This document shows, one piece after another, positions 7,961 to 62,070 of a stretch of DNA of 64,000 nt (position 1 is its first letter; the number at the start of each line of letters is the position of its first letter). Under the pieces are notes generated by a model. The model searched no databases, was not told where the DNA came from, and saw nothing but the letters and a program-made list of their open reading frames with translations. Source of the DNA: Octopus sinensis (lineage: Eukaryota). Where the stretch lies: assembly GCF_006345805.1 (NCBI RefSeq), contig NC_043002.1:100874001-100938000 (forward strand), in the 5' to 3' direction. Made by a program: the position numbers and the translations under genes.

Positions 7961-8059
7961 GGTGTCGGAGCAACTCGGTTATAGTCTAATTCCTATACAC
8001 ACGCACACCACCTACACGCATTCACAAACACATATTCGTGCGGTAACCCCCAACTTTAA

Positions 8060-8504
<445 letters not shown>

Positions 8505-10261: not shown

Positions 10262-10364
10262 CTGTTGTTGATAAGAAAATATATTAATTATTCTATTAAA
10301 ACTATTTTTATGACATAATTATGCCTACACTAGTCTAAGACTTTGGCAAAATATCAGCAATTTC

Positions 10365-10535
10365 AGGGGGACTATGAAATCGATTACAATAACTCTAATG
10401 TTTAATTGGGACTTATTTTATCGACCTGGAAGGGATCGAATGCAAAATCTAAGAGAAATTTAAATTCTTGTCAGAAAGGTAGAAAAAATTCCGATAAGTG
10501 AATATGCCCGACGTGCTAACAATTTTGCCCTCTCA
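10365..10535 (-). mobile_element. Ancient family-1 SINE in intron 3, shared by paralogs A, B and C
   Basis: Same decayed SINE at the same distance from exon 4 at about 47285-47470 and 58085-58250. Confidence 0.7.
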
Positions 10536-15378: not shown

Positions 15379-15519
15379 AGAACTCTTTTACCTTTATTTT
15401 CAGTTTACCATCAAACTTGTCGCATATTTGCTTGGCACATATATCGGATTTCGTTTCCACCCATTCTTCTTTAAAATCGCGGCAAAAAAAAATGTCGTCG
15501 ATACATCCTCCCGGACAAC
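15379..15519 (-). CDS. Gene A exon 3, first Cys-rich domain: (S)CPGGCIDDIFFCRDFKEEWVETKSDICAKQICDKFDGKLKIKVKEF
   Basis: Acceptor tttttctttAG, donor T/GTAAGT, 141 nt phase 1-1; lies in ORF 15329-15535; paralog at 60723-60857 with alignable flanking intron. Confidence 0.85.
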
Positions 15520-20214: not shown

Positions 20215-20435
20215 GCATTGGCAGAAACGGTAGCAGGCCGGGCGAAAAGCGTAGCCGTATTTCATCTGTCGTTACGTTGTGAGTTCAAATTCCGCCGAGT
20301 TCGACTTTACCTTTCATCCTTTCGGGGTCGATAAATAAAGTACCAGTTACACACTGGGGTCGATGTAATCGACTTAATCACTTTGTCTGTCCTTGTTTGT
20401 CTCCTCTATGTTTAGCCCCTTGTGGGCAATAAAGA
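20215..20435 (+). mobile_element. Family-1 SINE inserted in the Helitron
   Basis: TGGCAGAAACG box A-like and GAGTTCAAATTCC box B-like head with the family tail. Confidence 0.85.
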
Positions 20436-20649
20436 AATATATATATAATATATATAATCACCCAGGCAGCCGTAGTAGTGAGAACGGTATGATAACGGAA
20501 TGTTACTTTCAATAAAGTTTTCCTGCATCGCCATCAAATTCTAATCTGTAATCCGCTCATTGTCCTATTCAGCGAAACAAAAATGCTTACCAAGGCATCA
20601 TTTTCCACTTGTACTTGTACTTATCTTGATTTTCGGAAAGCTAAAGTGT

Positions 20650-22119: not shown

Positions 22120-24900
22120 TAATAATCACTTCGGTATGGAGCAGGTATTATAAAATGATAAAAGAATGAAATGAAGAAAATGGATACAAAGACGAAGAAA
22201 ATGGTAAGAGCACACGGAACTTTCCACCCTAAGCGTGACACCGGTAGGCTGTACTTGTCCAGAAGAAATGGATTATGGTGAAACAATGTGGTGCAGAAAG
22301 GGAATACAATGTGGATAAGAACTATCAATATAGAATTATAAGGAGGAAAGAAACAAATATTGTCATAAGCACGAGGGATGTGAAAGAGCAACTGGAAAGC
22401 CCTCGAACCGGATGGGATTCATGATTTCTGGCTGAAGAGATGCTACGCGGTGCAGGGAAGACTAGCAGAAAGGTGCATTCCCTCCGTGGATGGTGACATT
22501 TAAAAGGAAAGATAGATGAAAGGGGATTATTATGGGTTGTGGGAATCTACCGTCCCGTAGCATGCCTAAACATAATCTGGAAAGATACTCACTGGAATAT
22601 GTACGACCAAGACATACTTTTCTGACACAGGAAGAAATACTACTAAGGGAAGAGTTCTCGTGGTTACAAGGATCACCTGGTCATCGATAAAACAATTTTG
22701 AGGCGTTGTAAAAATCATTATACAAACATGTCTATGGCTTATATTGACTTTAAGAAGGCATATCATATGATGCGTCATTCTTTGATCGTTGAAAGCCTGC
22801 AGATGTTTGTTGTTGCTGACAATATCACAAATTTTGTGATGCTTATCATGAAAGAGTACAAAACCAAACTGTACTCAAGTAATGTATTCCTTGGAGCAGT
22901 TAATATTAAAGGGGGAATCTTCCAATGTGATTCGTTTTCTCCGTTACTATTTGTAATTCCACTAATACCTATAACAATGGCCCTTAGGAAAGTTAAGATG
23001 GGTTACAGATGTGGGAAGAAAGACCCACCATTGAACCGCCTCGAGATACGATACATAGTCAAGGACAAAGAATTTGGGACAGTAAAGGATGCGATGAAAT
23101 AGCATATCATAGCAGTAGCATACAAGCTCTCCAGATACCAGAAAAAATAGATCTATACGAACACAGTAGATTATTTGGGAAAGACCAGAGGAGATTCTAT
23201 AAGCAAATAAATATTGGAAAACGAAGTATTGAAGATGAGATAGCTAATGCAGACGAAGATAGAATGTTCAGAAATAATATTTTCGATGAGCCAGTCAATT
23301 ATAATGGAAATGCAGTATAGTCAAAGAAACTGAGGGAAGAATTAGTATATGAGAAGCAGCCAGATCAAAGAGTAACTAGTTCATTAATGAGTAAAGTGTT
23401 AGGAAAAATGACGAATTGGAAGTGCCAAGTTTCAGATTTAGTTCAAGCATATTGGTTAAAAAATTTAGTAGTTGACATAGGAGGCTGAGGGAACAACTTC
23501 AATATTGCCTTAATAGAGGAATAATACCAGATTGGATGACTAGATGGAGAACAATATTCATCATGAAAGACAAGAGCAAGGGTAATACAGCTGGCAACTG
23601 TAGACCAATCACTTGCTTACCATTAGTGCGGAAGCCGCATAGGAACTCTTTCAGGAAGCATTTACCAGCACATTCACAGCCAGAATTTACTGCCAGCAGA
23701 ACGGAAAGATGTCTAGAAGAACGCATGATCTATTATACAATGATAAAGCAGTTCTAAATGAAGTAAAAGCTAAAAGGAAAACTCTAACAATAGCATGGAT
23801 AGATTACAAAAGGTGTATAAAATGATTCCATACTCATAGATTAGTAATTTTTTGAGTATATTCAGTACTTCAGACAACAATGGAATAAATTAATAAATTA
23901 GCTGTAGTGTGAAGAAATGGAAAGTTTATCTCCACTCAGGTGACACAATGTTATGGAAAGTTAGTATCAAACGAGTAATTTTCTAGGCGGGGGGATTGTT
24001 CCCTTTAATATTCGTTTTATGTTTGATCCACCCCAGTTTACTATTAAGAAAGGCATAGGCAGTGTATCAGTTCAGATATAGTAAGGCAAACAAATAATGT
24101 TTTACATGGATGGTCTGAAGCACTTTGGTGAGAATGAAGAAGAGATCCATTCCTTAATACAGACTGTGAGACTCTCCAGCAAAGATATAAAGTTGGAACG
24201 TGGCATAGATGTGAGCACAATATTAGTCAGGAGAAGGGGACAGTGTCAAGAGCGAAGACATCAATGACTATTGGATTTCTGACAGGGTACTAACTGCAGC
24301 AATGAAACCGAAAATTATGAAGGAGTACATCAGGTGTGTGAGGATGCTTATGAAGACAAAGCTAAATGGTCCGAATCTAGATAAAACCTGAATTAGCAAA
24401 GTCAGAGAGAAAACTGGGAAGGAATTCAGTATGAATGGAGGTCTCTAACCAAAGGCAGGAGTAGTAAGATTATACTTACAGAGAAAGAAAACCGGAAGAA
24501 TGTGACTATCAGTAAAATACTACGTGGAGTTAGCTACAGTAGATATAGACTCCTATGTAGGTAATAGCGAAGAAAGTTTATTAAAAGCCGCTAGAGTCAC
24601 AACAAGACATAGGGAAAAACAAAAAGTGAAACAAACTTAAAAACCAGAAAACAGAACATATATTATCTAAATGGCAGGAGGAGGCATTGCATGGTAGATT
24701 CCCAAACATAGTTGAAGAAAATAATTGTACTAAGACATGGTTATGGTTGCAGATAGGAAAGCTGAAAAGGGAAACAGAAAGTTTGTTAGTAACTGCATAA
24801 AATCAAGCATTGGATAAAAACCAAGATAGACAAAAATCAACTAGATTACTTACGTAAAAAAATAATAAAATGCTGCCAGACTTATATTTCGCACATAGCT
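22120..24900 (+). mobile_element. Dong/R4-type LINE, two nested or rearranged degenerate RT fragments
   Basis: MSMAYIDFKKAY, GIFQCDSFSPLLF, GKDQRRFYKQIN and NCRPITCLPL motifs; RT region occurs twice. Confidence 0.8.
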
Positions 24901-28206: not shown

Positions 28207-28278
28207 GGAGGGCAGCCGGGATTGAACCGGAGACCCCTCGATATGCAGTCGAATGCTCTCCCACTGAGCTATACCCCC
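28207..28278 (-). tRNA. tRNA-Cys (GCA), variant or pseudogene
   Basis: GGGGGTATAGCTCAGTGGGAGAGCATTCGACTGCATATCGAGGGGTCTCCGGTTCAATCCCGGCTGCCCTCC folds as a cloverleaf with a GCA anticodon; atypical T37, T49:C65 mismatch and C73. Confidence 0.75.
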
Positions 28279-28321: not shown

Positions 28322-28391
28322 TTGGGTCTCCTGACATAACATCTTTCAATGCAACCAAAATCAGCAAACAAGAAGGAAGTAGTCGTGTCAT
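28322..28391 (-). CDS. Gene A exon 2 coding part, signal peptide MTRLLPSCLLILVALKDVMSGDP
   Basis: Acceptor tttgtatttccAG (exon starts 28397), ATG at 28391, donor A/GTAAGT in phase 1 joining exon 3 in frame; hydrophobic core with small-residue cleavage region. Confidence 0.8.
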
Positions 28392-30865: not shown

Positions 30866-32695
30866 ATGTCAGGTCACTTTCGAGTGCTATTGGTAACAAC
30901 CTGTTGCATGGTCGGGCCGTCGGCGACTAAACCGGCAACCCCACCAAGCTTGCTTGGTGAAGAGGGTGCTTATTGGACACCCTGCGGGATGGAAAACAAA
31001 GCCCGTCAAAGGGCGGAGGAACTCTTGAGAGTCAATGGCCATCCAATAAATACGTAATCATATGTTTACTGTATATCTGCCTTTTTCTGACTAATTTTTA
31101 TATATTGTATATTTTTATAGCTTGCTCATTATATAAATTCTATATATACTTCACATCATATATTTTATGTATATTTTGTATTTCAATGTTCTTTTTCTTC
31201 TCCTTATATCAATTTTATCCAGATTAAGGCTGTATCATGCGCGGGGACAGAAATAATCGGATTGAATACCCGATCGCGCGGTTAAACCATTGGGAGTGAA
31301 GGACTCCTAGCCTTTGTTAGGGTATCCTTCTAGAAGAAGGTAACTCAGGTAACTGGGATAACTCCGACATAAAACCTGCAACTCAGTGGTTACCGATGAC
31401 GTTGACTTGTTCTTCTTTCCGGATTATGGCTGCTGTTGCTTGGTGAGTGGGATTGACTCAGTGCACAGCCTTTCTTCACTTTAAAAAAATCTTCTTGCAC
31501 AGGCATTGCACGATAACGACGTTGATTGATTGATTAAATTGATTAACAAATTCATGATTGTTGATAGTGCTGTGAGTCTCAACTGAATGGCTGGCTGTAG
31601 CCTTAAAAAGCAAATGATGTACCAAACAGTATATAAATAAATGGCAGTTAGGACTCTGGAACCATATCAGATGAAGGAGTCTGGCCCGGCAGGGGCTCCA
31701 GAGCATCACAGTTTGAACCCGGCCGTCATCATGCTACTGTGATAGAACCAAATGAAATATTGAATATTGGCTGCTGGAATGTACGGATACTGCTTGACCG
31801 CAAGTCCTCTGAATGTCCCGAACGAAGGACTGCCCTTGTTGCGAAGGAGCTTCAACGCTATGATCTTGACGGCGTTGCTTTATCTGAAACGAGATTAGCC
31901 GGAGATGGTCATCTTACAGAATCTTGTGAAAAATATACATTCTTTTGGAAAGGGAGGAATGAAGAGTTTAGAGGAGAGGCTGGAGTGGCATTTGCTGTTA
32001 AGACTACTCTTGTGGACAAGTTGGAAGAATTCCCAGTCGGAATTAACGAGCGTCCATGAGAATTCCTTTGGTTAAAGGAAATTATGTGACCTTGGTGAGT
32101 GTGTATGCTCCAACTATGTGCTATACTGATGACGATAAAAATTTCTTTCTACCATGCTTTGAAGGGCATTATAAGAAATATCCCTCGGGCAGACAAAGTC
32201 ATCGTACTGGGTGACTTTAATGGTAGAGTGGGTAGGGATTTTAACACATGGACTGTAATTGGAAAGTACGGGGTGGGAAAGTGTAATAGTAATGGCATGC
32301 TTTTGCTGCGGAAGTGTGAGGAGCTGCGTCTAGGTGTTACCAATACCATGCTTCAGCAAAAGAATAAATTCAAGACCACATGGCATATTCCGGATTACAG
32401 GTGCGTGACAGGCAGGATGTGCAGTGTGTTCGTGTTCTTCGTGGAGCTGAGTGTTGGACTGACTACCGCCTAGTACGTACAAAAGTGAAATTAGTCACAA
32501 AACATAAAATCCGAGCTGCAGGGATTACCCTGCCTAAAAGACTGAGTGTTGATCGTCTCAGGTGTAATAGTGTGAAGAGAACTTTACGAGAGGAAATGAA
32601 TGCTGCAGATATTGGGGAGGATTGGCTGACCCTTAAAAAGTCCGTTTATGATATAGGCAAGAAAGTTCTGGGATTGATACAAAGAAAGCATAGAT
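30866..32695 (+). mobile_element. RTE-BovB-like LINE 5' part (5'UTR plus AP endonuclease), 3'-truncated
   Basis: LNIGCWNVRILLD...PERRTALVAKELQRYDLDGVALSETRL, IVLGDFNGRVG, GVGKCNSNG. Confidence 0.9.
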
Positions 32696-33015
32696 AGATA
32701 GATTATACGTAGATGGATGGATACTTACATGTATAGATATAAACGAACACAGACATATATTCACACACAGAAACAGAAAGTACAATTAGTCTAGATTTCG
32801 ACTTTATATCTTTTTTCTTTACCAAAAGAATCAAATGAACACATTGACAGATATCTTTATATTAGACACGTTTCCGATTTTATGTTCTATAAGAAAACAT
32901 TGACGAACAAATTCAGTTTTTAAAATCACATCTGAGTTATATTGCAAAACAAACATTTAGATATTTCATAGAAATTCCATTAAAAAAAATAAGATACTTT
33001 TAGAAGTTCACTTAC

Positions 33016-33056
33016 GTATACGAAAAGGACAATGCTGAGAAGAAATATAAAAGAAT
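33016..33056 (-). other. Putative non-coding exon 1 of gene A
   Basis: 41 nt from the initiator A to a GTAAGT donor at 33015-33010; contains no ATG. Confidence 0.6.
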
Positions 33057-33085
33057 GAAGAATGCGAAAGCGATGAGTATTTATA
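33053..33085 (-). promoter_or_regulatory. TATA box (TATAAATA, 33085-33078) and initiator (TCATTC, 33058-33053) of gene A
   Basis: First T of the TATA box lies 29 nt upstream of the initiator A; upstream 33160-33430 is paralogous to 47745-48020, 5' of gene B. Confidence 0.65.
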
Positions 33086-33429
33086 AGTGAATTTAACACC
33101 TCCAACACTAGTAAACAGCTGGTGACAATATATTTCAGTCCCAAACATGAATTTGATATTAATGACATTTCATAAAACACTTGCTGAGAACTAAAGATAT
33201 TTTATGGCTCGTAGAGAAGTGCAAACAGCGGTGTCTTCTACTACATCTGAACTTAATAATCTAACTAAAAAAAAGTTGCTTCGATCGAAGCGATAGAATA
33301 GATAATATCCAAGAGAGATCAATCGACAGATAGATACATATGCGCATATAGAGCTACGTCAGGTTTTTGACGATCCACGTTTCAAGAGTTTTAATTGTCT
33401 TGCCAATTCAGTTTCTAAAACCTCACATT

Positions 33430-43819: not shown

Positions 43820-44930
43820 AGAGAAAAGTGCGTGTGTTAGCGAGGGGAGTTATAGTCCAGAGTAGCCGGGGCGTGTGTCTTTGTGCGGTTGGAAGTATCA
43901 GTGAGTTCTTTTTTTTTTTGTTTGTATAAGCGACATGAAGTGTCAGTGGCAAAGATTAACTATGGCCTTGAGCAATTAAGCAAGTTAAGGAGAGTTATAA
44001 AGCACAGTGGAAATGTCAGGTATATATGAGCGAGGTGTGAATTCTAGCACAGGTATGGTGCATGTGTGGGTTTAAAGTAGAGACAAAGTGCAATTTAGTA
44101 CGTCTGTGTGTTTACGCGGATGGGTGTACGTGGACAGGGAGCAGGTACGTTTGGCTATAAATCATACCCCGATAATGTAAAACATTTTGTATGTCTGGAC
44201 GTGTTGATGTATGCGGTAATAAGGTGGAGGAGAGGCTGTATGTATGTGTGCATGAGTGTAAGCGTTGGCTATGAAGCTTTGATGGGCAGCGGGGTTTGTG
44301 TATTAGAGTACTGAATGTAAGTGATAGTTTGGTGATGAGATAAAGTGTGTCGGTGTGGTGTCTGTCTAAGTGAATTACGATTGAAGGTGCGGTAAAACGA
44401 AGGGGCAATTGAGGAGAAAAAGAACGGTAGGGGATTTTGTTATGGTGGCCTTGAAGAATTTTGAAAGGTCTCAGATGAATGATTGGCGGAATGGAAAGAA
44501 ATGTTGCATTTTAATCAAAACTTCGTTGTAACGATTTCTAACAATCATTAAAATCCTAGTGGATATATAGGAAAAACAACACAAAAAGAAGCTGTTGGGT
44601 TGGCTCTGTAATTAGTTTATTACATTATTTCTCACTCGTAGTTCAGTGATGATTTGTTTTTCTCTCTAGTTTCAGCTCAGTGCTGCGGCCATGTTGATGC
44701 ACCATGACAAAAATTAAATCTTAGCCCGATATAAATATTATCTCCTTCTTTATCAGTTCATAGTAAACTGGTTTGATTTTGGCTTCGGTTTCCGATTGGC
44801 AAATCTGTCGTTCTATAAAAATATAGATACACAAAATTATTATTTACATAAAATGGAATCAAATATTAACAAATAAAATTGCGTAGAGATGTTAATTATA
44901 AGGTTTAAAATTTTACTCCGATATAATATC
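43820..44930. repeat. Old paralogous segment of 4000-5030 (3' flank plus last exon of the gene family)
   Basis: Collinear blocks such as TTGAGCAATT, GAGGTGTG.ATTCTAG.ACAGGTATG and GGTGATGAGATAAAGT at both sites. Confidence 0.85.
44600..44812 (-). pseudogene. Gene B exon 5 (terminal exon)
   Basis: Acceptor tttttatAG at 44814-44813; in-frame TGA at 44760-44758; AATAAA at 44621-44616; SINE-tail fragment inside the UTR. Confidence 0.6.
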
Positions 44931-46250: not shown

Positions 46251-46670
46251 GTTTTTATATAATGTGCCTGTGTATATGTGTGTATTTTCATTGCTTGGTA
46301 TTATTCTAAATTTATTTACTGAACGTGTGAATACTGTTAGAAGAAAGGATTCTAAAAATTAGTCTTATATTATGACCCTCAGAGATATTGATGAATTTTC
46401 TGGAAATAACTATCCAACACCAGTGTGCAGAGTACTCCTGTGTGCATAAATTTCCAGCAAATATGACAAATATTCTGAATTGTTTGAAAGTGTACGACAT
46501 CTCTAAGAAAATGACTAGCATAACGAATTCAAGGTCAAGTTTTTGCATATTTTGATATCATTAGTTTAGTTTAAAATATACGTAGAAATGTACGTCCAGC
46601 AATGGCGAAAACAAGCTAATTGCATATATATATATATATATATATATATACGAGAAACACAGTAAATCCA

Positions 46671-46920
46671 CAACACACGCCAGTCACATATATCATCTCA
46701 AAAATAGAAATATTCCCTACATCTTGTCATGGTTCATAAGACTCAGGGCCTACGTACAAAAGGTCAACGCTCAGTCTGTAAGTTATGCCTAAAAGAGGCA
46801 TTCCACATATTAAAACAACGCTTCAATACTAGTAAATATATATAATGAGGCCCTAGGTACATGCAACCCTGACTTTTTCATACTTTCAAATTTTGCCCAA
46901 ATTTAGATGCTGCCTAAACA
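46671..46920 (+). mobile_element. Penelope GIY-YIG fragment, close copy of 53323-53586
   Basis: Direct sequence match. Confidence 0.8.
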
Positions 46921-47043
46921 ATGAGCTAACTGGAGTAAAATTTAGAACTGAATGCGAAGTATTTATTACAAGGACAACGCAACTGTAATATGGAGAAAAT
47001 ATACTACATGGGTTAAATCAAATAGCTTAAAATATATACTCAC

Positions 47044-47191
47044 AGACTTTTACATAATCCGGCATATGACATCGCGGTTTCAATGTTTTTATCTCCCTTA
47101 TATATGCAGGTGTGATTTCAGCAGATGCCGACACTGATGGACAAATCATCTGTGTTTGCCTTAGAACATGCGCCATTAGACAACCGACAAT
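47044..47191 (-). pseudogene. Gene B exon 4: CRLSNGACSKANTDDLSISVGIC*NHTCIYKGDKNIETAMSYAGLCKS(L)
   Basis: 148 nt, splice sites intact, TGG to TGA at 47120-47118; exons 1-3 absent upstream. Confidence 0.85.
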
Positions 47192-47534
47192 CTATTGATC
47201 AGAAAACGATCACTTTATTGATTATTGTATTTAAACTATTTCGGTGACATAATTATGCCTATACTGGCCCAAGACTTTGGCAAAATGTTAGCACTTTCAG
47301 GGGAACAGGTAAGTCGATTACAATGACTCTAATACTTAAATGGTACTTATTTTATTGACCTGGAAGGGATCGAATACAAAATCGAACTCCGAGAAGTTTC
47401 AATTCAAGTCAGAAAGCCATTAAAATTTTCGGTAAGCGAAAATGCCCGGCGTGCTAACTATTTTGCCCTCTCATCGTTTCTATTAGTGATATTCTGGTAT
47501 ATATATATTTATATACACCAGAATATCACTTGTT

Positions 47535-47740
47535 TAGCCCTTTGTGGGTGGTAAAGAAATAGGTATTTTGTCTGTTTGTATGTTCTGAGTTCAACGTCCG
47601 CCGAGGTACACTTTGCCTTTCATCCTTTCGGGGTCGATTAAATAAGTACCTGTTACGCACTCGGGTCGATCTAATCGACTTAACCCCTTTGTCTGTCCTT
47701 GTTTGTCACCTCTGTGTTTATCCACTTGTGGGTAGTAAAT
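47535..47740 (+). mobile_element. Family-1 SINE at the gene B deletion junction
   Basis: Matches family-1 consensus body and tail. Confidence 0.8.
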
Positions 47741-47744
47741 ATAA

Positions 47745-48020
47745 TAATGACATTTTATAAAATACTTGCTGACAACTATAGACTATTTTATGGCTCGTAG
47801 AGAAGAGGAAACAATGGCTTCTTCGTCTGCCCCTGAACTAAAAAATAAAAAATAAAAACAAGTTTGCACCGATCCACACAACACAAAGGATAACATCGTA
47901 GGTAGATCGATCGAGAGATAGATAGATACTCTCATATAGAAACCTAAGTCAGTTTTTAGAAGATACATATTTCAAAGCTTTAATTTTCTTACAAATTATA
48001 TGTTTTTAAAACCTTACTTC
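47745..48020 (-). promoter_or_regulatory. Paralog of the region upstream of the gene A promoter (33160-33430)
   Basis: AATGACATTT.ATAAAA.ACTTGCTGA.AACTA.AGA.TATTTTATGGCTCGTAGAGAAG shared. Confidence 0.7.
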
Positions 48021-48789
48021 AGCAACTTAAAAGGCACGATATAATCGTTGCCTTAAAACTGGAGCATTGTGACACGGATATAAATTGCCATATGAAAGGT
48101 TTTCTTTATTGATTGTACACAAGTCTTAGAAATAATCGATAAAACCCTCAGAAGTCACAATATTCAGACCATTTTGTATCAACACAATACTTCTTCCTTT
48201 TTTCAAATTTCCCATCATTTTTTCAATGCTCCTTTCCTTCTTCTGTCAAGTATCGACACTAAACTGCTCAGGAAACTTGTAACATTTTACATTTTCCTTT
48301 TCCTCCAATATTGTTTATTTCCTTTTCTTTCCGTCAATGCTCTCTTCTCATGCATCTTCAATCCCATACCTTCTGCAACTGTTTTATTTGCATTACAATC
48401 TGGCTCACCCCGTTGCAAAATGGGACACCTGCTAGACGCGGCATCTCCAGCATTGGCTCTAGTCCCGTTCACATCGTTATCGGTAGCATTTACTCTCATA
48501 AATGAGGCGCGATTTTAGCTTGCCACCGACCGGTATTTTTATCGAGACACCATCTGTAGCAAGGTTGCCCACGAAGATGTATCAGATAATTCTGAGCATA
48601 ATAAATCCTTAATAAATCTAAACCCATTAACATATAGTTTTCAACCCAACCTTAAAATTGGAGAGAAAATATTTACAAAAAGTAAATGTTGCCTTTGAAT
48701 CAGATTTTCCTCCTAATGGTTTCTAACAATCATAAAGATCACAGAGTATCCATCAGAAAAAAAGAAAACAGAGCAAAACAAATAGCGCA

Positions 48790-48971
48790 GTTGGCTGTGA
48801 AATGAGTTTATTGCGTTATTTATTACACGCGTTTCTGTGAGGATTATAAGAGAGAAAGATTAAAGCTTGACCCGGTATAAGGATTATCTCCTTCTTCATC
48901 GGTTTATTGCAAATTGATTCTGGCATCGGTTTCGATTTCGTTTTCGGTTCTAGACTGGTCAGTCTCACTTT
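48790..48971 (-). other. Gene C exon 5: (L)K, TGA at 48967-48965, 3'UTR with AATAAA at 48812-48807
   Basis: Acceptor tttttatAG at 48973-48972; paralogous to the terminal exons of A and B. Confidence 0.7.
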
Positions 48972-49193
48972 CTATAAAAATATAAATTATATAAAATAAT
49001 TATTTATATATAGCGAAATGCAAATATTACCAAATAAAATTGGCTAGCGTTGTTAATTATCTTTTTTACTATAACAGCATTTAAATCTTTACAAATTTAC
49101 AGCCATTAAAGGATAAAGTAATGATAACTTCGATGAATTTAATTGCCAGCTGTTGAGATCTCTCGTGCAGTGTAATTTCGATGACAGCACGAA

Positions 49194-49238
<45 letters not shown>

Positions 49239-49699
49239 TATAGACAAATACTATAACATTCTCACTTTGACTACTGTAATTAAATATACAAACATTTATA
49301 CAAGCCATAAACAAAATAGGTATAAGCATACATACATAGTTATATATATAGATACATACATACATACATACATAATTTCCACATAAGCAGTGACGTAGAT
49401 GGCCCCTACTTAAAACGAAAACAATGCGGCAGAGGCTTAACATCGATCTAAAATGCCTTTGTATGTCGCATCATATCCCTTCGGCAATATTTTTAAGCGA
49501 CACACTTGGTCGTTAGTGTATCGCTTGACCAAGTTTGCATACACGAAACTGATAAAACCATAAGACTTGGAAGGCAGCTCCTTGAGCAACACTTTGTCTG
49601 GTAATGTAGAATACAAGCTCAAAAACGTTGCATGACTACCGCAACGTAATGAAATGAAAGGATGAACCTATATGAGGAGAAGATATGTTAATAGACGGC

Positions 49700-50420
49700 T
49701 CCGTGATAATAGTAGCATTCGATCGTCAAAGCAGTTTATCATGGAACAATAGCCAGATTACTACCTCCTACTTTGAAGGATAAGATTTTGCAATCCAGGA
49801 ACAGGAAATATCAACCAAGTACCTGATGCACAAAATGGATAACGATGCAGGAAAAGCCGTAAAATGTAACAACCGATGCAGACTACGTGGAGTTCACACT
49901 GAAGTTCACACCCACATCATAAGCAGTTGCCCAAAAATGTCATCAGGGTATTATCTACCGTTGAGTTATGGCGATGTAGCTAGAACACTCTATAATTAAA
50001 TCTGTCGGAAGGATAATCTAGAGGACAAACAAACAAGAACCCACAATATGGTAGAAACCGTTGCCACTCATAATATAATGTAAGCACAAAAGACCTGATA
50101 TAATTATTTGGAATAGAGGAGAGAAACTGCACACTGTTGTGGAAATTAGCTGCCCAGAAAAAGCTGAAGATCAGTGAAAGAGAGAATACCTATGCTGAAC
50201 TATTGAGATATCAGCAGTTGCTCTATCCAGATTACAAGTTCAGGTTTCAACCTTTAAATCTGGGGGCCCTGGGATATGTAACGTAATACTTAATTACCAA
50301 ACTTGAGGAATTAGGCTTCTCAAAACTAGAAAGTAGAAAGCTAATTCGAAGACAACAGATCCAGTCCATCACTGGAACTCTAAAATTCTGTAAAACTTTC
50401 CAGAAGTTTATCATTTAAAT
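49700..50420 (+). mobile_element. Dong/R4-type LINE 3' end (CCHC plus restriction-like endonuclease)
   Basis: NRCRL..HIISSCPKMS..YYLP and PDIIIWNRGEKL.TVVEISCP motifs. Confidence 0.8.
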
Positions 50421-50534
50421 ATATACGAGCATGTCTATATAAGAAACTACATACACCAGAATAGATACATAAGACACACAAATCTGCACAATCTTGAAAT
50501 AAACTGAATAATGATATACATACGTACATACACA

Positions 50535-50599
<65 letters not shown>

Positions 50600-50615
50600 A
50601 TAGAGATATGTATAT

Positions 50616-50692
<77 letters not shown>

Positions 50693-50815
50693 GGAGTAAG
50701 CACACAAATGTGAAAGTACACAAAGTAGAAAGAAGAGCACTCAAATACCAAAGGTAGAGTAATATGCTCTAAAAGCAGCAGAAATATAACAAAAGCTGAT
50801 ACTCAGAGTATATAA

Positions 50816-50867
<52 letters not shown>

Positions 50868-51326
50868 ATACAACAATTTACGTCGTTAATTGGTTCCAAG
50901 AGACACGACTGGAGTCGAATTAACTTGTCTCTAGGCTAAACCGATAATAACCATTCCCAGTTCTGTACTTTATTTATGAATACATTTTCAATAAAACTTG
51001 GTTAAGGAAAATCCATGTATGCTAAAATCTTATCCTTATTAAGTACAATATTCAATACAGTTGTCCGACTCATCCCAAAAGGTCATGGAATTGGTACCAT
51101 TTATTCACCTTTCTCATGCCGTTTTATCATAGCCATTTAGCCTTCCAGCGTTATGGCATGACGCTTAGCATTTTCATAATGAATATTTTAGGAGTCCTGG
51201 GGACAAAGGTAAAGCTACAAATGTATAAAAATGAGAAAGTAGCCAATAAACAGACGTAAAAAAATCTGAGTCCGATTTGGGTGGGCTAGTCAATCTAGTG
51301 GCTATTCATCAAGGGATTCATACGCA

Positions 51327-51359
<33 letters not shown>

Positions 51360-51823
51360 GTAAAGCTAAACTAGCACAAACACAAACACAAACACACAAG
51401 CACGCACACACAGAAATACATAAATATACAGAATATAACCATACATACGTACATACACGCATACATACATGCATACATGCATATATACATTATATACATG
51501 CACAAACACACGCACACGTTCTTATGCATACACGTATGCAACAAAACCTCAAAGAAACAAAAATATGCCGCCTGTATAACGGACTAAATCAGTGAGAAGT
51601 TTGCAAGAAGCTACCAAAGAGCATTCACAAACAAAAGAAAACAACTGGAATGTGCTAGACGAGTGTGTGTGTTAATTATATTGTAGATGTTAATTGTACC
51701 TTGTTAATATATTGTGTCTGTTAATAATATGCGTTAGACACAACAAACTTTCTTTCAACACAAGAATTCCGATTAAGAATCTAGCAAAGCAGATACAAAA
51801 GCAATACACACGCACACACATAC

Positions 51824-51875
<52 letters not shown>

Positions 51876-52199
51876 TCTCTCTCTCTTTCTCTCTCTCATA
51901 CACGCACACATGTTAAATAAATGAGACAACAAAGCCAAAGCTGTCCGAAATTTTCAGCACATTTACAAAGAGAAATATAGTCTTGCAACTGTTTCTGGGT
52001 AGTAGGAATCTCCCTTCACCAGAGACAATGTGAGATGTTTAAATAGAGGGAAATATTAGAGTTCAATATAAGGAGTCATTTGGGAAAAGAATGGAACGTA
52101 ACCCCACTAGAATTTAACATAATCCTTAATGCACGTAAAGCACTTAGTCTTTTAGGACAAAAATTGCTGATCCACTATAACTAACATTAACCATAGTAA

Positions 52200-53700
52200 A
52201 TTGTTTGACATTACAATAGGATCATCCGACTCCGTCCAAGTCACTGACTTCGTTGGACTATACATACTCCACTAGCTTCAACTACATTTCCCTAACACCA
52301 AGGAAAGCCTCTTTAGAGATGATGTCTAGCTCGTCACGAAGAGCGTAAATAAATCCTCTTTATAACGAGTTAGGAAAGATCTACACAAGTTTTTCTCTCG
52401 CATCCACTTTGCTAATCCTTTTGAAAATTTCCACAAATCCACTAATTTTTAGTCGTAACTCTAAACTTAGGAATGTCGCAATACTCTCCATATCACAAAC
52501 CTAACCTTAATTACTTAAACATTAATTCCAATCAGCACAAATCCACCTTTGATAATATAGTTAAGGATATCTCGATTCGTATATCTGACAAATTATCCAC
52601 TGAGGAAATATTCAGTAACCAGACCCACATTACATCCAAGAACTTACTGCCAGCGGCTTCTGCCGACAAATAAAATACACCCCTAATACTAGGTTCAAGC
52701 AACATATATCTCAATTCATAACACAACGACATTCCAACCAGCAGAATCACACATACATTATACTAAAACTCCAAGACATATAACTCTAGATCAAAAGCTA
52801 TAACGGCTAACAATAACGTGCCATATTACTACCTCTAATTTCTAAAAATATAGATAATACTTCCCCTAAACAACCAACATAAAAGCGGCCAACGCTCTAT
52901 GGTATACACCTACCTTCACACGAAAAGTTAAGAACTTAGCTAAATAATTTTTTAACATACTAGAGACCAACTTTCCTGTGTCAACATATATATCACTCTA
53001 TCTTTAACAGATTTACATTAAAGTTATCCTACCCTTCCCCACCCAAATTTGAATTTATCATAACAGCCTCTAATAAACGAAAACATTCTCTCTATTATCA
53101 AAACTCACATTGTAACATATCTGGATACACGTGCGCCCAGTGTATACATAGCTGCCGTTCTGGAAACATCTGCCCTCTACAAAACCATTGCAAAATGTCT
53201 AATGTAATTTATAAATGCATCCTCCTAAAAACGTTACACAATACTACAACCATATATGTAGGATCAACTATTAATTTTTAACAGAAATACCCCGTACATG
53301 TCAATTCTTTTAGGTACGATAAACACAGTAAATCCACAACACACGCCAGTCACATGCATCACCTCAAAAATAGAAATATTCCCTACATCTTGTCATGGTT
53401 CATAAGACTCAAGGCTTCCATACAAAAGGTCAACGCTTAGCCTGTAAGTTATGCCTAAAAGAGACATTACACATAATAAAACACAACGCTTCAATACTAG
53501 TAAATATACGCAATGAGGCACTAGGTACATGCAAACCCGATTTTTTCATACTTTCAAATTTTTCCCAAATCTAAATGCTGCTTAAACAACACTTAATCCG
53601 AACACCACTCAGGTAATCCTTAACAACCCTATTTGGCTTTCTATTGTCTCCGTTTTTAATTTCTTAACTCTCCAATCTTCTTTTAATTGTTTAATACTAT
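52200..53700 (+). mobile_element. Penelope-like element 3' half with GIY-YIG
   Basis: NVIYKC..IYVGST..H..SF..LSW.I..Y..C.LCL.E pattern. Confidence 0.75.
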
Positions 53701-53749
53701 ATAAATGGGCACGCATGCGGATATATGTGTATATATATATATATATATA

Positions 53750-54441
53750 AGAAGCGGAAGCCACATACGGACCCAGGTTTCAAGGTGTTTGCCTATTATC
53801 AACGTATGGTAGGCACCGCTCCTCGACAAACAACTCCCCATGCAGGATGAAACCTGGGTCCGTATGTGGCTTCCGCTTCTTCGGTGAATGATCTCCCTTT
53901 GCAGGATAGAGGACGCCGTGATGGTGTCAAGCCTTTCTGGTGACGTTGATGTTCGCCTGGGGCTAAATGCAACAGTAACACCCCCACCACCCTGCCCTGT
54001 CCCTAGCCATATCAGATGGCTAATGCCTCTTATGTTATGGAGCAGTTACTGTCGATATCTCATTTAGAGAATTATTATTGCTGTCGAACAGATTTTCGAA
54101 ATCAGTAAATGTATTTACTTGAAAATCTTTATATATATATATCCTGCATGGGGAGTTGTTTGTCGAGGAGCGGTGCCTACCATACGTTGATAATAGGCAA
54201 ACACCTTGAAACCTGGGTCCGTATGTGGCTTCCGCTTCTTCGGTGAATGATCTCCCTTTGCAGGATAGAGGACGCCGTGATGGTGTCAAGCCTTTCTGGT
54301 GACGTTGATGTTCGCCTGGCGCTAAATGCAACAGTAACACCCCCACCACCCTGCCCTGTCCCTAGCCATATTCAGATGGCTAATGCCTCTTATGTTATGG
54401 AGCAGTTACTGTCGATATCTCATTTAGAGAATTATTATTGC
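53750..54441. repeat. Local inverted plus direct duplication (P, Q, spacer, inverted P, Q)
   Basis: 53750-53846 reappears inverted at about 54141-54240; 53848-54082 is repeated at 54206-54441. Confidence 0.9.
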
Positions 54442-54491
<50 letters not shown>

Positions 54492-54647
54492 AATGTATAT
54501 ATGTATGTATGTATATATGTATAAATGTGTGTGTATGCTTGTGTCACGTGCATGTGTGTATATGTACGCACGTGTATGCGCGTATGCATTTCTGTATTGG
54601 TGTGTGCGTGTGCATGTATATATATACATACATACATACATATATAT

Positions 54648-54720
<73 letters not shown>

Positions 54721-55029
54721 CAACATGCGTACGTGTCCAAGTGCACAGCTACGCAGGCCTACATAATAGTGAATATACACACACATATGTATGTGTGTGC
54801 ATGCGTGGATATATCAATATACACTTCTTTCTTTCCCTCTGATAACTCATCCCACACTAGCCAGCTCAATATATCTATTTATAGAAATTTGACCATGACA
54901 TCTTAGTATTCTTCCCTTCCCTTTTGTGATCTACTACTCACTTTAGAACACCCTATATATCTTTTGGTACCCACCTTTAGTGCCATTCTAACATAACAGC
55001 CCTCCTCATAATCCTCATGCATATTCATG

Positions 55030-55510
55030 TCTGGAATGTCTGGAATGTCTGGAATGTCTGGAACGTAAGGAATGTTTGGAATGACAGGAAAGTCGGGAAT
55101 ATCAGGAATGTCTGGAACGCCTGGGATGTCGGGAATGTCAGGAATATCTGGAATGTCAGGAATGTGTGAATGTCAAGGATGTCTGGAATGTCTTGTCTGG
55201 AATATCTGGAATGTCAGGAATGCCTGGAATGTCTGGAATGTCAAGAATGTCAGGAATTTCTGGAATGTTGGGAATGTCTGGAATGTCAGCAATGTATGGA
55301 ATGTCAAGAATGTCAGGAATATCTCGAATGTCTGGAATGTCAGACATTTTTGGCATTCCAGACATTCCACACATGACATTCCATTCCATTCCATGACGTG
55401 ACTTGACATTCCGTTTAACGTCACGTCATGTAACGTCATTTAACGTCACGTCATATAACTTCATTTAACGTCCTTTAACATCAAGTCATTTAACGTGACG
55501 TTATATGACT
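55030..55510. repeat. 9-bp minisatellite (GGAATGTCT/A) to about 55370, then 10-bp TTTAACGTCA-type repeats
   Basis: Seen directly. Confidence 0.9.
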
Positions 55511-56052
55511 CGAATATTCCAAAGTAGATCCCCTGGGTAGCTCTCCCAGGATAGCCCCTTTCCTAAAGGTGAAGACACATAGCACACTATCTTCACACGA
55601 AGAAGGAGTACGCCCTAATAACGAACTCCCTCATTATACAAGAACAAGAATCCAAGGACAGAACAAAAACAAAATAATAAAAAATAATTCAAAAAATTAA
55701 TCATAAAAAAATTTACTTCTAAAGACAAATCCAAGGGAGACAAACATAAAAAAATGGCACTCAAGAGTAACGTCCCTTGATCCATTGTTTTACTGACTAG
55801 AATTTACAAGAATGAACGATTCGAGACTGTTTTCTGCAATGGAGGTGAACACCTTTCTCCATGTGATCGCCTTGGGAAATTGTTAAGACACTACGATATT
55901 TCCCTACTTTTCTTAGCATGAAATCAATGGTAGCCTTAATTCACAAATATAGAGATTATTATTCACCAATGTGGTGTTGAGCAATCATTTCATTGTTCGA
56001 CATTTACGCATACGTACACACACATATACAAGCAAACACCCACACACACACA

Positions 56053-56139
<87 letters not shown>

Positions 56140-56149
56140 GCTACTACTA

Positions 56150-56945
56150 CTAATATAGGATGAAGTTTTTTTACAGAAAAAAAATTCCATAAAAAAATGT
56201 GGCAGCATATTCAAATACCTTTAAGGTTAAAATTATAAACAACTTATAAACAAGGGATAAAGTACCCCAGCTATATCTAACTATAAAATCCTAGGTTTCC
56301 TCGATTGTTGGCTAGCTTTCCTCAATTTCAGCTGTACGTATTTTCTGTAACGAATAAATAATATGTGGAAATTGACGATTTAAAAGTCTGTTATCAGCAT
56401 ATTGGCATAGAAATTATTTTCTTTAGCACTTGTTTATAAGTTGTTTATAATTTTAACCTTAAGGGCATTTTAATATGTTGCCACATTTTTTTATGGAATT
56501 TTTTTCTATAAAAAAACATCATCCTATATTAAGTAGTAGACTTATTACCTTTCGCTATAGGGACTGGTAACCACTATAAGCTGTAGTGGAGAATAGTTCA
56601 CACGGGTGCTGAGGCTGACCAAAGAATTTTATATTTAGATATATCTGTAGTACTTATATGTATTCATGATTTTTTTTCGGCTTTTTTTCCATGGGCACAT
56701 ATAAGTATTTCATTTATTTCTTTTCGTATTTTCTACTGAGGAGGAAAAAATCTATTATGAGAATAATTCCGAATTTGATTCAATACAGAATTAACGAACG
56801 TTCTTAAAAGATCCTGTTGGCTAACATTCCTCGATTTCAGCTCTACGTGTTTTCTGTAGCGAATAAATAATACGTGGAAATTGACGATTTAAAAGTCTGT
56901 TATCAGCATATTGGCATAGAAATAATTTTATTTAGCCCTTGTTTA
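56150..56945. repeat. ~115-bp inverted repeat (56150-56272/56421-56532), interior re-duplicated at 56810-56945, with a decayed hammerhead at 56731-56790
   Basis: Direct comparison; CTGAGGA-GGAA..TTCC-GAAT-TTGATTCAA-TA-CAGAA. Confidence 0.75.
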
Positions 56946-56947
56946 CT

Positions 56948-57004
<57 letters not shown>

Positions 57005-57827
57005 AATAAATATATATATGTATATATATACGCATATATATATTTATATATATTTATATACACATGCATATATATATGCATGTTATGCATGTTTGTTAAC
57101 GGGTATTCGTCTTGATACTAAAAATGTTTCGTATAATAATTTCAGTTCTTAATGTTATGACAAAACTATTAGAACTATTTGAACCCCGATAATCTGTTTC
57201 AAACCACGTGCAAACACGTTCAGTCTCACTGGACGTTTCCGTGCGCAAGTTTAGTTTCCTATAGATCTGATTCGATCATAATGAATTTAGATAAATTCTG
57301 TAGAAAGAAACTTTGTCAAAATCCGTCATATATATATATATATATATGTATGTGGGTGCATATGTATATATATGTATGCATATATATACACACACACTCA
57401 TATATATATATATAATGTGCTTGTATGTTTGTTTGTTTTATATTTTGTCCGTGTATTCGGTGTCCCACAAAGAAACCGATGGAATGAGAACCGCATTTAA
57501 AAATAGATAAATACATGTATCTATTTGTTCATGTAAACCATTCAAGCGGCCGTAATCATGCTCAACTTAACAAATAGAAAGCAGCTTGACATGGGTTTCC
57601 CTGAAAGAGAAACAGACACGTTTTAAATTTCAAAAAATATAAAATAGCGATTTTAACAGTTTTATCATTCTACTGGAAATGTTAAGATTTGTATTTCCAC
57701 ATCTAAATTCGAGCTAACTGGAGTAAAATTTAGAACTGAAGAGGAAGAATTACAAGGACAACGCAACTGTAATATGGAGAAAATATACTACATGGGTTAA
57801 ATCAAATAGCTTAAAATATATACTCAC

Positions 57828-57975
57828 AGACGTGAACATTTTCCGGCATATGACACGTCGGCTTGAATGCGATATTTTGAATGATATATGCAGGTGTGAT
57901 TCCAGCAGATGCCATTTTTGATGGTTATATAATCTGTGTTTCCCTTAGAACATACGGCATTAAAGAACCGACAAT
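57828..57975 (-). CDS. Gene C exon 4: (Y)CRFFNAVCSKGNTDYITIKNGICWNHTCIYHSKYRIQADVSYAGKCSR(L)
   Basis: Acceptor ttttcttatcaacAG, donor CT/GTGAGT, 148 nt open. Confidence 0.85.
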
Positions 57976-58574
57976 CTGTTGATAAGAAAACGATCACTGT
58001 ATTGATTATTCTATTTAAACTATTTCGGTGACATAATTATGCCTATACTGGCCCAAAACTTCGGCAAAATGTCAGCAATTTCAGAGGAACGGGTAAGTCG
58101 ATTACAATGACTCTAATGCTTAAATGGTAATTATTTTATCGATCTGGAAGGGATCGAATACAAAGCCAACCTTGGAGAAGTATGAATTCAAGTCAGAATG
58201 CCATTAAAATTTCCGGTAAGCGAAAATGCCCGGCGTGCTAACTATTTTGCCCTCTCATCGTTTCAGTTAGTGATATTCTGGTATATATATTCATTTAACG
58301 TAACTTATTACGCATTTTGGATATTGAGTTCATATTCCTAAAATCGGAATAGATTAAAGTATTTGTTTGTATCGTTTGTTGCTGGTTTTAAAGGACAGGT
58401 AGAACACATTTCTGTTTCTATATACACCAGTAACATGAAAGGTATTTGGAAGCATTATATTCGGTTATATAGGTAAAACTGACACTACGCCGGTCACAAC
58501 ATCGAGGGTTTCAGTTTTGTGCCCTTAACTTAGTTCTGAGGGTGTTTCATAATATGATAATTACAGGTAAGACT

Positions 58575-59290
58575 CATTTCTGCTAGTTGAATGGACTGGG
58601 ACAATGTGAATTAAAGTGTCTTGCTCAAGAACACAACACACTGCCAAGAATCGAACTCACGACCATGAGCCGAATGCCCTAACCATTAAGCCACGTTCCT
58701 TCAAACGTTATAAAAGTTATCAAAGCGGCGAGCTGGCAGAAACGTTAGCACGCCGGGCGAAATGCGTAGCCGTATTTCGTCTGCTGGTACGTTCTGAGTT
58801 CCAATTCCGTCGAGGTCGACTTTGTCTTTCATGCTTTCGGGGTCGATAAATTAAGTACCAGTTACGCACTGGGGTCGATATAATCAACTTAATCCGTTTG
58901 TCTGTCCTTGTTTGTCCTCTCTGTGTTTAGCTCCTTGTGGGTAGTAAAGAAATAAGAATCGTAAGCACGCCGGGCGCAATGCTTATCGGTATTTCGTCCG
59001 TCTCCATGTTCTGAGTTCAATTTACGCTGAGGACCACTTTGCCTTTCATCCTTTCGGGGTCGATGAATTAAGTATCATTGGCGTACTGGTGTCGATCTAA
59101 TCCACTTGCCCCTCCCCACAAATTTCAGGCCTTCTGCCTAAAGTAGAAAAGTTATAAAAGTTATCTTTTAGTGAACCTACTGCGGCAACGTGCATTAAAG
59201 TGTCTTGCTCAAGAACACAAAGCGCTGACAATAATCGAACTCACGACCGAGAGCCCATTGCCGTAACCTCTAGGCCACGCGCCTTCACAC
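58575..59290. mobile_element. SINE cluster: family-1 copies on + (58723-58955, 58958-59150) and heads of a third SINE family on - (58575-58700, 59195-59290)
   Basis: Family-1 consensus; TTAAAGTGTCTTGCTCAAGAACACAA..AATCGAACTCACGACC duplicated. Confidence 0.75.
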
Positions 59291-60722: not shown

Positions 60723-60857
60723 ACACTTCTCGTTCAGCTACTTGCAATTTACCATCAATACGCATGCATTGGTTCCTGGCACATTTATAGGAATACTTTT
60801 CCAACCATCTTCTTCCCTCCTCATGGCATTTTTCCTTGTAGTAACATCCACTACACC
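60723..60857 (-). CDS. Gene C exon 3: CSGCYYKEKCHEEGRRWLEKYSYKCARNQCMRIDGKLQVAEREV
   Basis: Acceptor poly-T-AG at 60859-60858, donor T/GTAAGT, 135 nt phase 1-1, joins exon 4 in frame; aligns to A exon 3 (W.E..S..CA...C...DGKL). Confidence 0.85.
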
Positions 60858-61074: not shown

Positions 61075-61225
61075 ATTGTAAGTGGGATGATGGTGGATGT
61101 GTTGCTAAAAGTACAAAATGGAGTGTCGTCAGGGCCGGCGGGTCTTGCTGGTCTTACGTCTGCGACTATAAAGGAATTACAGACGTTAGAGCCGAAAAGA
61201 AATTTCTCGGAAAATGTTCACCTCT
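61075..61225 (+). CDS. Copy D exon 4: CKWDDGGCVAKSTKWSVVRAGGSCWSYVCDYKGITDVRAEKKFLGKCSP(L); 5' exons not found
   Basis: Intact acceptor and donor; 5 nt and 3 aa differ from A exon 4; may be a non-expressed orphan exon. Confidence 0.65.
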
Positions 61226-61656
61226 GTGAGTATATATGTGAAGCTATTAAAATTACTTCATATATTACATTTTCTCAATATCATTGTTGCGTTGACCTTT
61301 TTGCAACATTTCCTCTTCTGTTTTAAATTTAGCTCCAACTTTGAAGTGAAAATACAAATCTGAGGATTTCGAGTTGAACATTAATATATTTAAAATACCT
61401 TTTTAAAAAAATTTATAATGAGCTTGTCTTTTTGTTTTTCAGAGAAGCCCATGTCACACTGTTTACTATTTCTCAAGTAGAGCATGACTGCTGCTATATT
61501 TTCAATATACAGGATATTCCATTATAGTTTTTCTTAGCCAATTTTTCATCAGAACTAGAGAGTAAAATAACTACATGCTTTTTCCTATTATCGTAGCAGA
61601 TTGAACTTAGGAAGAAAATATCCCAACTATAATTTGGAGTGGCGAACGCCTTCTTC

Positions 61657-62070
61657 AAGGCAGCGAGATGGCAGAAACGTTAGCACGCCGGGCGAAATGC
61701 GTAGCCGTATTTCGTCTGCCGTTACGTTCTAGGTTCAAATTCCGCCGAGGTCGACTTTGCCTTTCATCCTTTCGGGGTCGATAAATTAAGTACCAGTTAC
61801 GCACTGAGGTCGATATAATCGACTTAATCCGTTTGTCTGTCCTTGTTTGTTCTTTCTGTGTTTAGCCCCTTGTGGGTAGTAAAGAAATAGGTATTTCTTC
61901 GGCCGCTACGTTCTGAGTTCAAATTCCGCCGACGTCGACTTTGCCTTTCATCCTTTCGGGTCGATAAATTCAGTACCAGTTACGCACTGGGGTCGATATA
62001 ATCGACTTAATCCGTTTGTCTGTCCTCGTTTGTCCTCTCTGCGTTTAGCCCCTTGTGGGTAGTAAAGAAA
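61657..62070 (+). mobile_element. Two tandem family-1 SINE copies
   Basis: Mirror of 9250-9675. Confidence 0.85.

Follow-up and report, generated by a model that had tools for sequence, protein, structure and literature searches.

A 64,000-nucleotide stretch of the Octopus sinensis genome (contig NC_043002.1, positions 100,874,001–100,938,000; hereafter the window) appears to hold part of a tandem cluster of genes for small secreted proteins, a family that we found only in Octopus. Each gene would encode a conserved signal peptide, followed by two all-beta modules of ~47 residues that each contain five cysteines, and then a short tail that varies among members. We refer to the exons for the first and second modules as R1 and R2, and to the four copies of R2 that self-comparison revealed in the window as A, B, C, and D. 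R2 is the exon that a preliminary description of B and C called exon 4, a number that fits if a conserved element upstream of the signal exon is an untranslated first exon. Taken as a whole, the evidence makes it quite probable that this is a tandem Octopus family whose duplicated R2 exons have been subject to positive diversifying selection on a disulfide scaffold. The central component, diversifying selection on the cysteine scaffold, is well supported by the codon comparisons below.

Divergence between exon copies B and C

Copies B (47044–47191) and C (57828–57975) are 148-nt exons on the minus strand, with an acceptor ending in ACAG and a donor beginning with GTGAGT. Read in the frame at offset 2, each yields a 48-residue peptide with five cysteines. 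The frame of C is intact (CRFFNAVCSKGNTDYITIKNGICWNHTCIYHSKYRIQADVSYAGKCSR), whereas codon 24 of B is TGA, in place of an invariant tryptophan that C and every relative encode by TGG. The two exons differ at 35 of 148 nucleotides (76.4% identity, p-distance 0.236), and the differences are spread over 23 of the 48 full codons. All 23 change the residue, one of them to the stop, and no difference is purely synonymous. These counts match those of the preliminary description apart from its 26 conserved residues, for which we counted 25 identical full codons. By codon position, the changes number 15, 11, and 9 at first, second, and third positions, so that third positions changed least. In a neutral simulation with 35 hits placed randomly, only 0.7%–1.2% of trials lacked a synonymous-only codon.

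Non-coding sequence around the two exons changed much less. The conserved intron upstream of B (47192–47506, minus strand) is 8.3% different from its counterpart in C (57976–58290) and 17% different from that of A, and the conserved downstream intron (46923–47043, minus strand) is 3.4% different from C (57711–57827). A further non-coding block (46649–46921, minus strand, versus 53315–53589 in C) is 8.8% different; it lies a few hundred base pairs from the exon in B and 4.2 kb from it in C, where an insertion of 4.1 kb sets it apart. Pooled over both flanking introns and this block, non-coding divergence was 54/705 (0.077), significantly below that of the exon (Fisher test, p = 1.5e-7). Nei–Gojobori counts assigned the exon 2.0 synonymous differences (Sd) over 29.5 sites and 32 nonsynonymous differences (Nd) over 111.5 sites (dS 0.071, dN 0.362). 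Nonsynonymous divergence exceeded non-coding divergence (p = 4e-9), and synonymous divergence was indistinguishable from it (p = 1.0). Amino-acid change in the two exons outran change in the non-coding DNA around them roughly fourfold. The earlier proposal that these exons outpace their introns around a fixed cysteine framework is borne out (0.236 versus 0.077), and the excess is specifically nonsynonymous. An 83-bp identical run reported at 46965–47047 and 57749–57831 is exact, with 79 of its bases intronic, and a run of this length is not unusual by chance (P ~0.06). Over the first 110 bp of the upstream intron we counted nine differences, where about eight had been reported.

Codon models and comparisons across copies and species

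We modeled six R2 exons (A, B, C, D, and two Octopus bimaculoides orthologs; 48–49 codons) with our own implementation of the Goldman–Yang (GY94) M0 model under three codon-frequency models. The nonsynonymous-to-synonymous rate ratio (omega) was 5.2–5.7, and a likelihood ratio test (LRT) against omega = 1 gave 22–23 (p ~1e-6) under all three, in keeping with the dN/dS above 1 that had been anticipated. The B/C clade alone gave an omega of ~8, and removal of a possibly misaligned patch of 10 codons left omega at 5.3–6.1 (p ≤ 7e-5). Polarized by the O. bimaculoides ortholog, 13 changes were unique to B, 19 to C, and 18 to the ortholog or the stem. Among codons altered in a single lineage, 19 were nonsynonymous and one was synonymous. 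Change per lineage amounted to 9%–13% in the exon and ~4% in the introns. Since the duplication, replacements in both B and C appear to have accumulated at roughly two to three times the neutral rate; cysteine codons, synonymous positions, and the introns, including their splice-proximal parts, changed at that rate or more slowly.

The contrast between exon and intron extends to more distant copies and to the other module. The R2 exon of A is 56% identical to that of B or C, compared with 82%–84% for the introns, and the R1 exons of A and C are 58% identical, compared with 86% for the intron. Between the A orthologs of the two species, R1 has 22 nonsynonymous and no synonymous differences (Nd 22, Sd 0; p = 0.013), and the introns differ by 9%–12%. 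Replacement-site divergence in this comparison is twice the intron divergence (p = 0.001).

A gene family of octopuses

A profile of the five intact window exon translations, searched against 1.84 billion representative proteins, recovered five true relatives; a sixth match was a low-complexity repeat protein. P0001 matched at E = 2.3e-20 and P0002–P0005 at 1.8e-7 to 1.4e-5. A family profile searched against 5.8 billion proteins found seven members (E ≤ 1e-44), which all come from O. bimaculoides or O. sinensis and are all entered as "uncharacterized protein." The exhaustive HMMER search recovered P0001 from a database in which a word-indexed search had missed it; the latter, with exon peptide C and the spliced A domain as queries, returned no candidates, yet the A domain shares eleven 5-residue words with P0001. 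No Pfam domain was found in the seven family proteins, and the single-exon peptides and the spliced two-exon domain gave only chance Pfam matches (CILP_5th, E = 0.033; SWIRM, E = 0.068). Searched against the PDB, the domain gave one chance match with phmmer (a chromodomain, E = 0.28), and the family profile matched none of the PDB sequences. A search of the accessible literature found no paper naming these loci or accessions, and the literature on the octopus sperm attractant and on salivary-gland novelties yielded nothing relevant. The family is apparently undescribed and, among the sequences searched, apparently confined to Octopus.

Family proteins are mostly 117–154 residues long, with one isoform (P0007) reaching 205 through an N-terminal extension. 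They share a conserved signal peptide (MTRLFPFCLL...), from which secretion would follow, and ten invariant cysteines in two modules. The modules encoded by R1 and R2 are internal repeats of a ~47-residue unit with the spacing C-x6-C-x14/15-C-x4-C-x15/17-C and a tryptophan seven residues past the second cysteine. The tails are variable, with dibasic sites in several. Using tblastn of the family proteins on the window and five related loci (L001–L005), we found the same exon structure throughout the family: a signal exon, a separate exon of unchanged phase for each module, and an optional tail exon, with matching splice contexts. Cysteine codons are fixed by position. The identical codons that had been reported for all five cysteines of B and C hold in 10 of 10 R2 copies from three genomes (TGT, TGT, TGC, TGC, TGT), and R1 uses TGT, TGT, TGC, TGT, TGC in all three copies. 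The 25–100 bp of intron on either side of R2 are conserved at least as well as the exon, even between paralogs that are ~30% identical in protein. Proximal intron motifs recur in almost all copies (TAGGCATAATTATGT upstream, GTGAGTATATATTTTAAGCTATTT downstream), and those of the downstream intron (46923–47043 in B) occur in nearly every family member that we examined.

At 80%–90% identity, the window is collinear with CM046606.1:106998605–107028227 of O. bimaculoides (L001), where LOC128248175 is the counterpart of gene A. With the O. sinensis loci L002 and L003, the window has only repeats in common. O. bimaculoides has a single B/C-type R2 exon (L001 1998–2145). Upstream of it the sequence is collinear with C; downstream, where an intact tail exon follows, it is collinear with B. 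Intron distances are 0.03–0.08 between B and C and 0.11–0.15 between either copy and the O. bimaculoides ortholog. Because O. bimaculoides has one copy that is C-like upstream and B-like downstream, and because the intron distances agree, the alignments indicate that B and C arose by duplication after the split from O. bimaculoides. The R2 exon of the O. bimaculoides copy has a TAA right after the last cysteine, its tail exon (L001 ~4953–5009) is intact, and database searches turned up no corresponding protein. At L001 29414–29497, ~10 kb downstream of LOC128248175, there is a signal exon (MTRLFPFCLLIWATLKVHMTVADKSKCP) that belongs to another member of the family. It has no exact match among the retrieved proteins, and this member may be unannotated.

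The preliminary description treated B and C as two copies. This holds for the exon, which has four copies in the window, and not for complete genes, B being truncated and carrying a stop. The R1 exon upstream of C (60723–60857, minus strand, 135 nt) fits R2 in phase, with a split codon for tyrosine. No R1 exon (by tblastn) or signal exon of B's own was found in the window. An intact tail exon lies downstream of B (44761–44814, minus strand; RTTDLPIGNRSQNQTSLL followed by a stop) and is 89% identical to its O. bimaculoides counterpart, and the tail-like piece downstream of C (48932–48973, minus strand) is degenerate, with in-frame stops. Since B lacks R1 and signal exons, the tail of C has stops, and the segment containing D starts at 60950, B and C are best described, from the layout of the locus, as a duplicated R2-containing segment of ~1.2 kb in one locus rather than as two whole genes. 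Given the TGA at its tryptophan position and the lack of R1 and signal exons that belong to it, B is now a dead or orphaned exon copy.

Predicted fold

An AlphaFold2 model of P0001, built with the seven-sequence alignment, shows an all-beta mature domain with a pLDDT of ~90 over residues 30–110. A Foldseek search of the PDB placed pairs of fibronectin type I (FnI) modules in all of the first 14 ranks (probability 0.93–1.00). An FnI module folds into a two-stranded and a three-stranded antiparallel sheet. Like FnI modules and the FnI-like N-terminal subdomain of the von Willebrand factor type C (VWC) domain, the octopus modules are predicted to be all-beta units of ~45 residues stabilized by disulfides. 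They also share a conserved tryptophan after the second cysteine of the scaffold, one module per exon, and a tandem pair. Differences from FnI are clear in the cysteines: FnI has four, with disulfides 1–3 and 2–4, whereas each octopus module has five in the other spacing given above, and TM-scores were 0.4–0.5. Neither the window peptides nor any of the seven family proteins matched Pfam fn1 (PF00039) at E ≤ 10, and no VWC profile match was found at that threshold either. We treat the predicted likeness as resemblance in fold, not membership. To our knowledge, FnI modules are otherwise known from chordates, and the octopus family adds a probable FnI-like module outside them, as judged from the model.

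Alternative explanations

Several points weigh against selection as the explanation. The sample is small (six sequences of 48–49 codons), the R2 exon of the A orthologs has an omega of ~1.1, and the exons of A and D are no more divergent than their flanks (3.3% versus 2.4%–4.0%). B is interrupted by a premature stop, lacks upstream exons, and since the duplication may never have formed part of an expressed protein. Because the O. bimaculoides copy has a TAA and no protein match, the whole B/C lineage could be decaying, as far as these sequences indicate. Many of the differing codons hold two or three changes, events that single-step codon models over-count, and at least one patch of C looks like a 6-bp deletion plus a 6-bp insertion; compensated indels may account for part of the divergence. 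In the exon, the distances that separate B, C, and the ortholog are star-like (35, 34, and 40 nt), and introns group B with C, which would also fit homogenization of the flanks by gene conversion. The fold match is weak (E 0.012–0.17; target-normalized TM-score 0.40–0.53), and the whole case is drawn from sequence and a predicted structure.

Gene conversion of the flanks is the strongest rival explanation, and we consider it unlikely. Under it, B and C are old paralogs whose introns and conserved exon parts were recently homogenized, while the variable patches escaped. The preliminary description had named intron-restricted gene conversion as what would undo its reading; our evidence runs against it, yet some features leave the objection with weight. 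The block of high B–C identity spans only ~1.2 kb (46649–47560 versus 53315–53589 plus 57711–58368), homology between B and C in the tail region is far lower (79%–82%), and exon distances are equal where intron distances (0.08 versus 0.11–0.15) join B with C. A fragment upstream of B (47741–48017) resembles the promoter-side-like sequence at 33156–33423, hinting at a once-separate gene and obscuring the history of B. Against old paralogy stands the single O. bimaculoides copy, collinear with C upstream and B downstream. Old paralogs under constraint should also differ most at third codon positions, where B and C differ least, and should not show 19 nonsynonymous changes to one synonymous in single-lineage codons. 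For five or six patches of ≤30 bp to have escaped within 148 bp, selection against homogenization of the variable residues would itself have been needed, and the identical intron run is within chance length. The exon–intron contrast is also present between orthologs of different species, where conversion cannot act.

Two further explanations dispense with selection on the protein. A mutational artefact, in which clustered multi-nucleotide events (compensated in-frame indels, template switching, or patchy ectopic conversion from distant paralogs) are confined to the exon, strikes us as very unlikely. It would account for the 11 of 23 differing codons with two or three changes, for a transition-to-transversion ratio of 11:24 in the exon versus 15:11 in the intron, for the re-alignment of C codons 31–35 to the ortholog as the paired 6-bp deletion and insertion, and for the A–D differences, which consist of two adjacent dinucleotide changes and one single change. 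Such a process would not spare cysteine codons, reading frame, and synonymous sites, nor halt exactly at splice sites. In addition, omega stays at 5.3–6.1 without the 10 suspect codons, and a search of the window and the five related loci turned up no donor for the patches specific to B or to C. Neutral pseudogene decay combined with purifying selection on functional introns (for example, on splicing elements) would make the exon rate the true neutral rate, and we find this hardly credible. It is consistent with the TGA in B, the stops in the tail-like piece of C, the early TAA in O. bimaculoides, the fragmentary nature of D, and the proximal intron motifs kept in almost all members, which suggest some constraint. 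Synonymous sites (0.068) and the further non-coding block (0.088) nevertheless track the introns (0.083) and not the replacement sites (0.287). Intron constraint as the cause is contradicted because synonymous sites and a distant block match the introns, and decay fails because a pseudogene cannot outrun the neutral rate. All copies retain the reading frame and the five cysteine codons, 25 full codons are unchanged between B and C, and omega = 1 was rejected. Diversifying selection on the R2 exons remains the reading that we prefer.

Comparison with known systems

Among known systems, the conotoxin genes of cone snails, in which the mature-toxin exon evolves at an accelerated rate, are close in pattern. 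Like the octopus genes, they form tandem multigene families in a molluscan host, encode secreted disulfide-rich products with a conserved signal sequence and hypervariable stretches between cysteines, and have long introns rich in transposable elements (TE) beside the variable exon. Conotoxin genes show position-specific conservation of cysteine codons (PMC3823881), as the octopus family does with TGT, TGT, TGC, TGC, TGT in R2, and Ka/Ks above 1 (PMC10561478). The octopus product differs from these peptides of 10–40 residues in being ~100 residues long, with two repeated modules and no propeptide exon. The family is also tiny, with seven proteins found in two species, and is known here from sequence. 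We found no relation in sequence or fold to any conotoxin superfamily.

Snake venom genes offer a second parallel: between recent duplicates their coding exons outpace introns, nonsynonymous change equals or exceeds synonymous change, and cysteines stay fixed. Nakashima, Ohno, and colleagues reportedly described conserved introns and accelerated exons in genes for venom phospholipase A2 and three-finger toxins. Unlike the octopus proteins, these toxins belong to another phylum, fold, and function, and their venom role is experimentally established. The mussel MgCRP-I peptides and myticins, families of hypervariable cysteine-rich peptides, differ in being short, with six to eight cysteines in another pattern, and in having immune-related expression data; no homology of the octopus family to them was detected.

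Possible function and significance

We propose that the proteins act as extracellular binding or recognition molecules whose partner may be changing or paralog-specific (a prey, pathogen, gamete, or conspecific target). Selection would then act on the exposed loops and hairpins of the disulfide-stabilized scaffold. Since FnI pairs bind extended peptides through strand addition, the FnI-like fold suggests beta-strand addition to an extended peptide as a possible binding mode. Candidate roles, as far as the sequences suggest them, are venom, defense, reproduction, or signaling. Diversifying selection as earlier proposed is supported by the codon model, the R1 exon, and the orthologs, and the further step to venom is not, given that our searches found no named relatives, Pfam domain, or paper.

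A more ambitious account, which we regard as a long shot, is that the family is a previously unrecognized octopus class of effector or recognition proteins, whose two FnI-like modules originated, or were co-opted, outside the chordates. An arms race with prey, pathogens, sperm–egg partners, or conspecifics would shape the variable hairpins of these proteins, and C and B would be, or have been, mutually exclusive exons of one gene. The two duplicated R2 exons do sit between one R1 exon and one intact tail exon, and R2 has phase 1 at its start and phase 2 at its end; because of these phases, either exon could be included, whereas both together are ruled out.

Exons that clearly outpace their own introns are few, and mark genes in molecular arms races or recognition systems. 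The evolutionary pattern is already known, and the gene family is a new example of it, in cephalopods, whose lineage-specific genes are mostly uncharacterized. The cluster is small and tractable (~170 kb in O. bimaculoides), encodes secreted proteins with a confidently predicted scaffold, and is a candidate for octopus venom, mucosal defense, or reproductive recognition. Gene annotation overlooks some members: neither the B/C-type copies nor gene A of the window has a protein record in the databases searched.

Gene A and other features of the window

The window is AT-rich eukaryotic DNA, crowded with microsatellites and retroelement fragments. Gene A lies entirely on the minus strand. Its signal-peptide exon (28322–28391) encodes MTRLLPSCLLILVALKDVMSGDP plus one nucleotide, has a GTAAGT donor in phase 1, and agrees at 90% identity with the signal peptide of P0001 and with L001 9934–10105. 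The R1 exon (15379–15519, 141 nt) joins the R2 exon (10111–10261, 151 nt), the ortholog of that of LOC128248175, through a split tyrosine codon. The coding part of the tail exon (8670–8715) reads (L)HVTKAAPKEKHGIP and then a stop, and has diverged from the O. bimaculoides tail QVIEDTQNKTA through indels. A conserved element (33010–33133, minus strand) lies upstream of the signal exon and was identified by tblastn with the N-terminal extension of P0007. The extension also matched L001, L004, and L005, and the element is present in every family locus; it probably represents either an untranslated first exon or sequence on the promoter side.

R2 had also been a candidate for the last coding exon, as its frame reads CTG TGA across the donor and P0008 does end in this way. 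This is wrong for the ortholog of gene A, which splices to a tail exon. An antisense open reading frame in the conserved intron (ATG...CAG followed by GTAAGT; 47257–47310, plus strand) was ruled out by a stop in copy A. Rfam and tRNA scans for an RNA gene in the conserved introns found only a tRNA-Cys (GCA) at 28207–28278 (minus strand), which is inside the first coding intron of gene A, ~45 bp downstream of the signal-exon donor.

Copy D (61075–61225, plus strand) is part of an incomplete second copy of gene A in inverted orientation (7810–10387 versus 64000–60950), and differs from the R2 exon of A by 5 nt in three codons, all nonsynonymous. The duplication is at least 2.6 kb long and runs past the window end. 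Its identity is 93.6% over 8379–10387 with gaps counted (~96% for substitutions only) and 98% over 7810–8032. It carries the R2 exon and downstream intron of gene A, and adjoins the R1 region of C at 60950. Degenerate B/C-type tail copies with stops are found below gene A (4857–4898, minus strand), below C (48932–48973, minus strand), and at L001 ~20255–20562, which suggests older rearrangements of gene ends within the cluster.

The C-specific insertion (53589–57711) contains an inverted repeat (53749–54082 versus 54442–54141, 99%–100% identity), microsatellites, and a tandem array (55025–55343) whose unit is ~9 bp or some multiple of that length. Fragments of mobile elements lie in the introns and upstream region of gene A (18366–18683, minus strand; 22647–23099 and 31652–32056, plus strand), among them a Helitron-like match to the Pif1 2B domain (E = 3.8e-11) and weak matches to LINE-type reverse transcriptase and endonuclease. 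An interspersed repeat of ~180–235 bp occurs at 1624–1785, 9250–9676, 20219–20439, 47531–47747, 58720–59113, and 61655–62070. Its copies are 80%–93% identical, lie in both orientations and sometimes in tandem, and are also present in the O. bimaculoides and O. sinensis loci; it is probably a SINE-like element.

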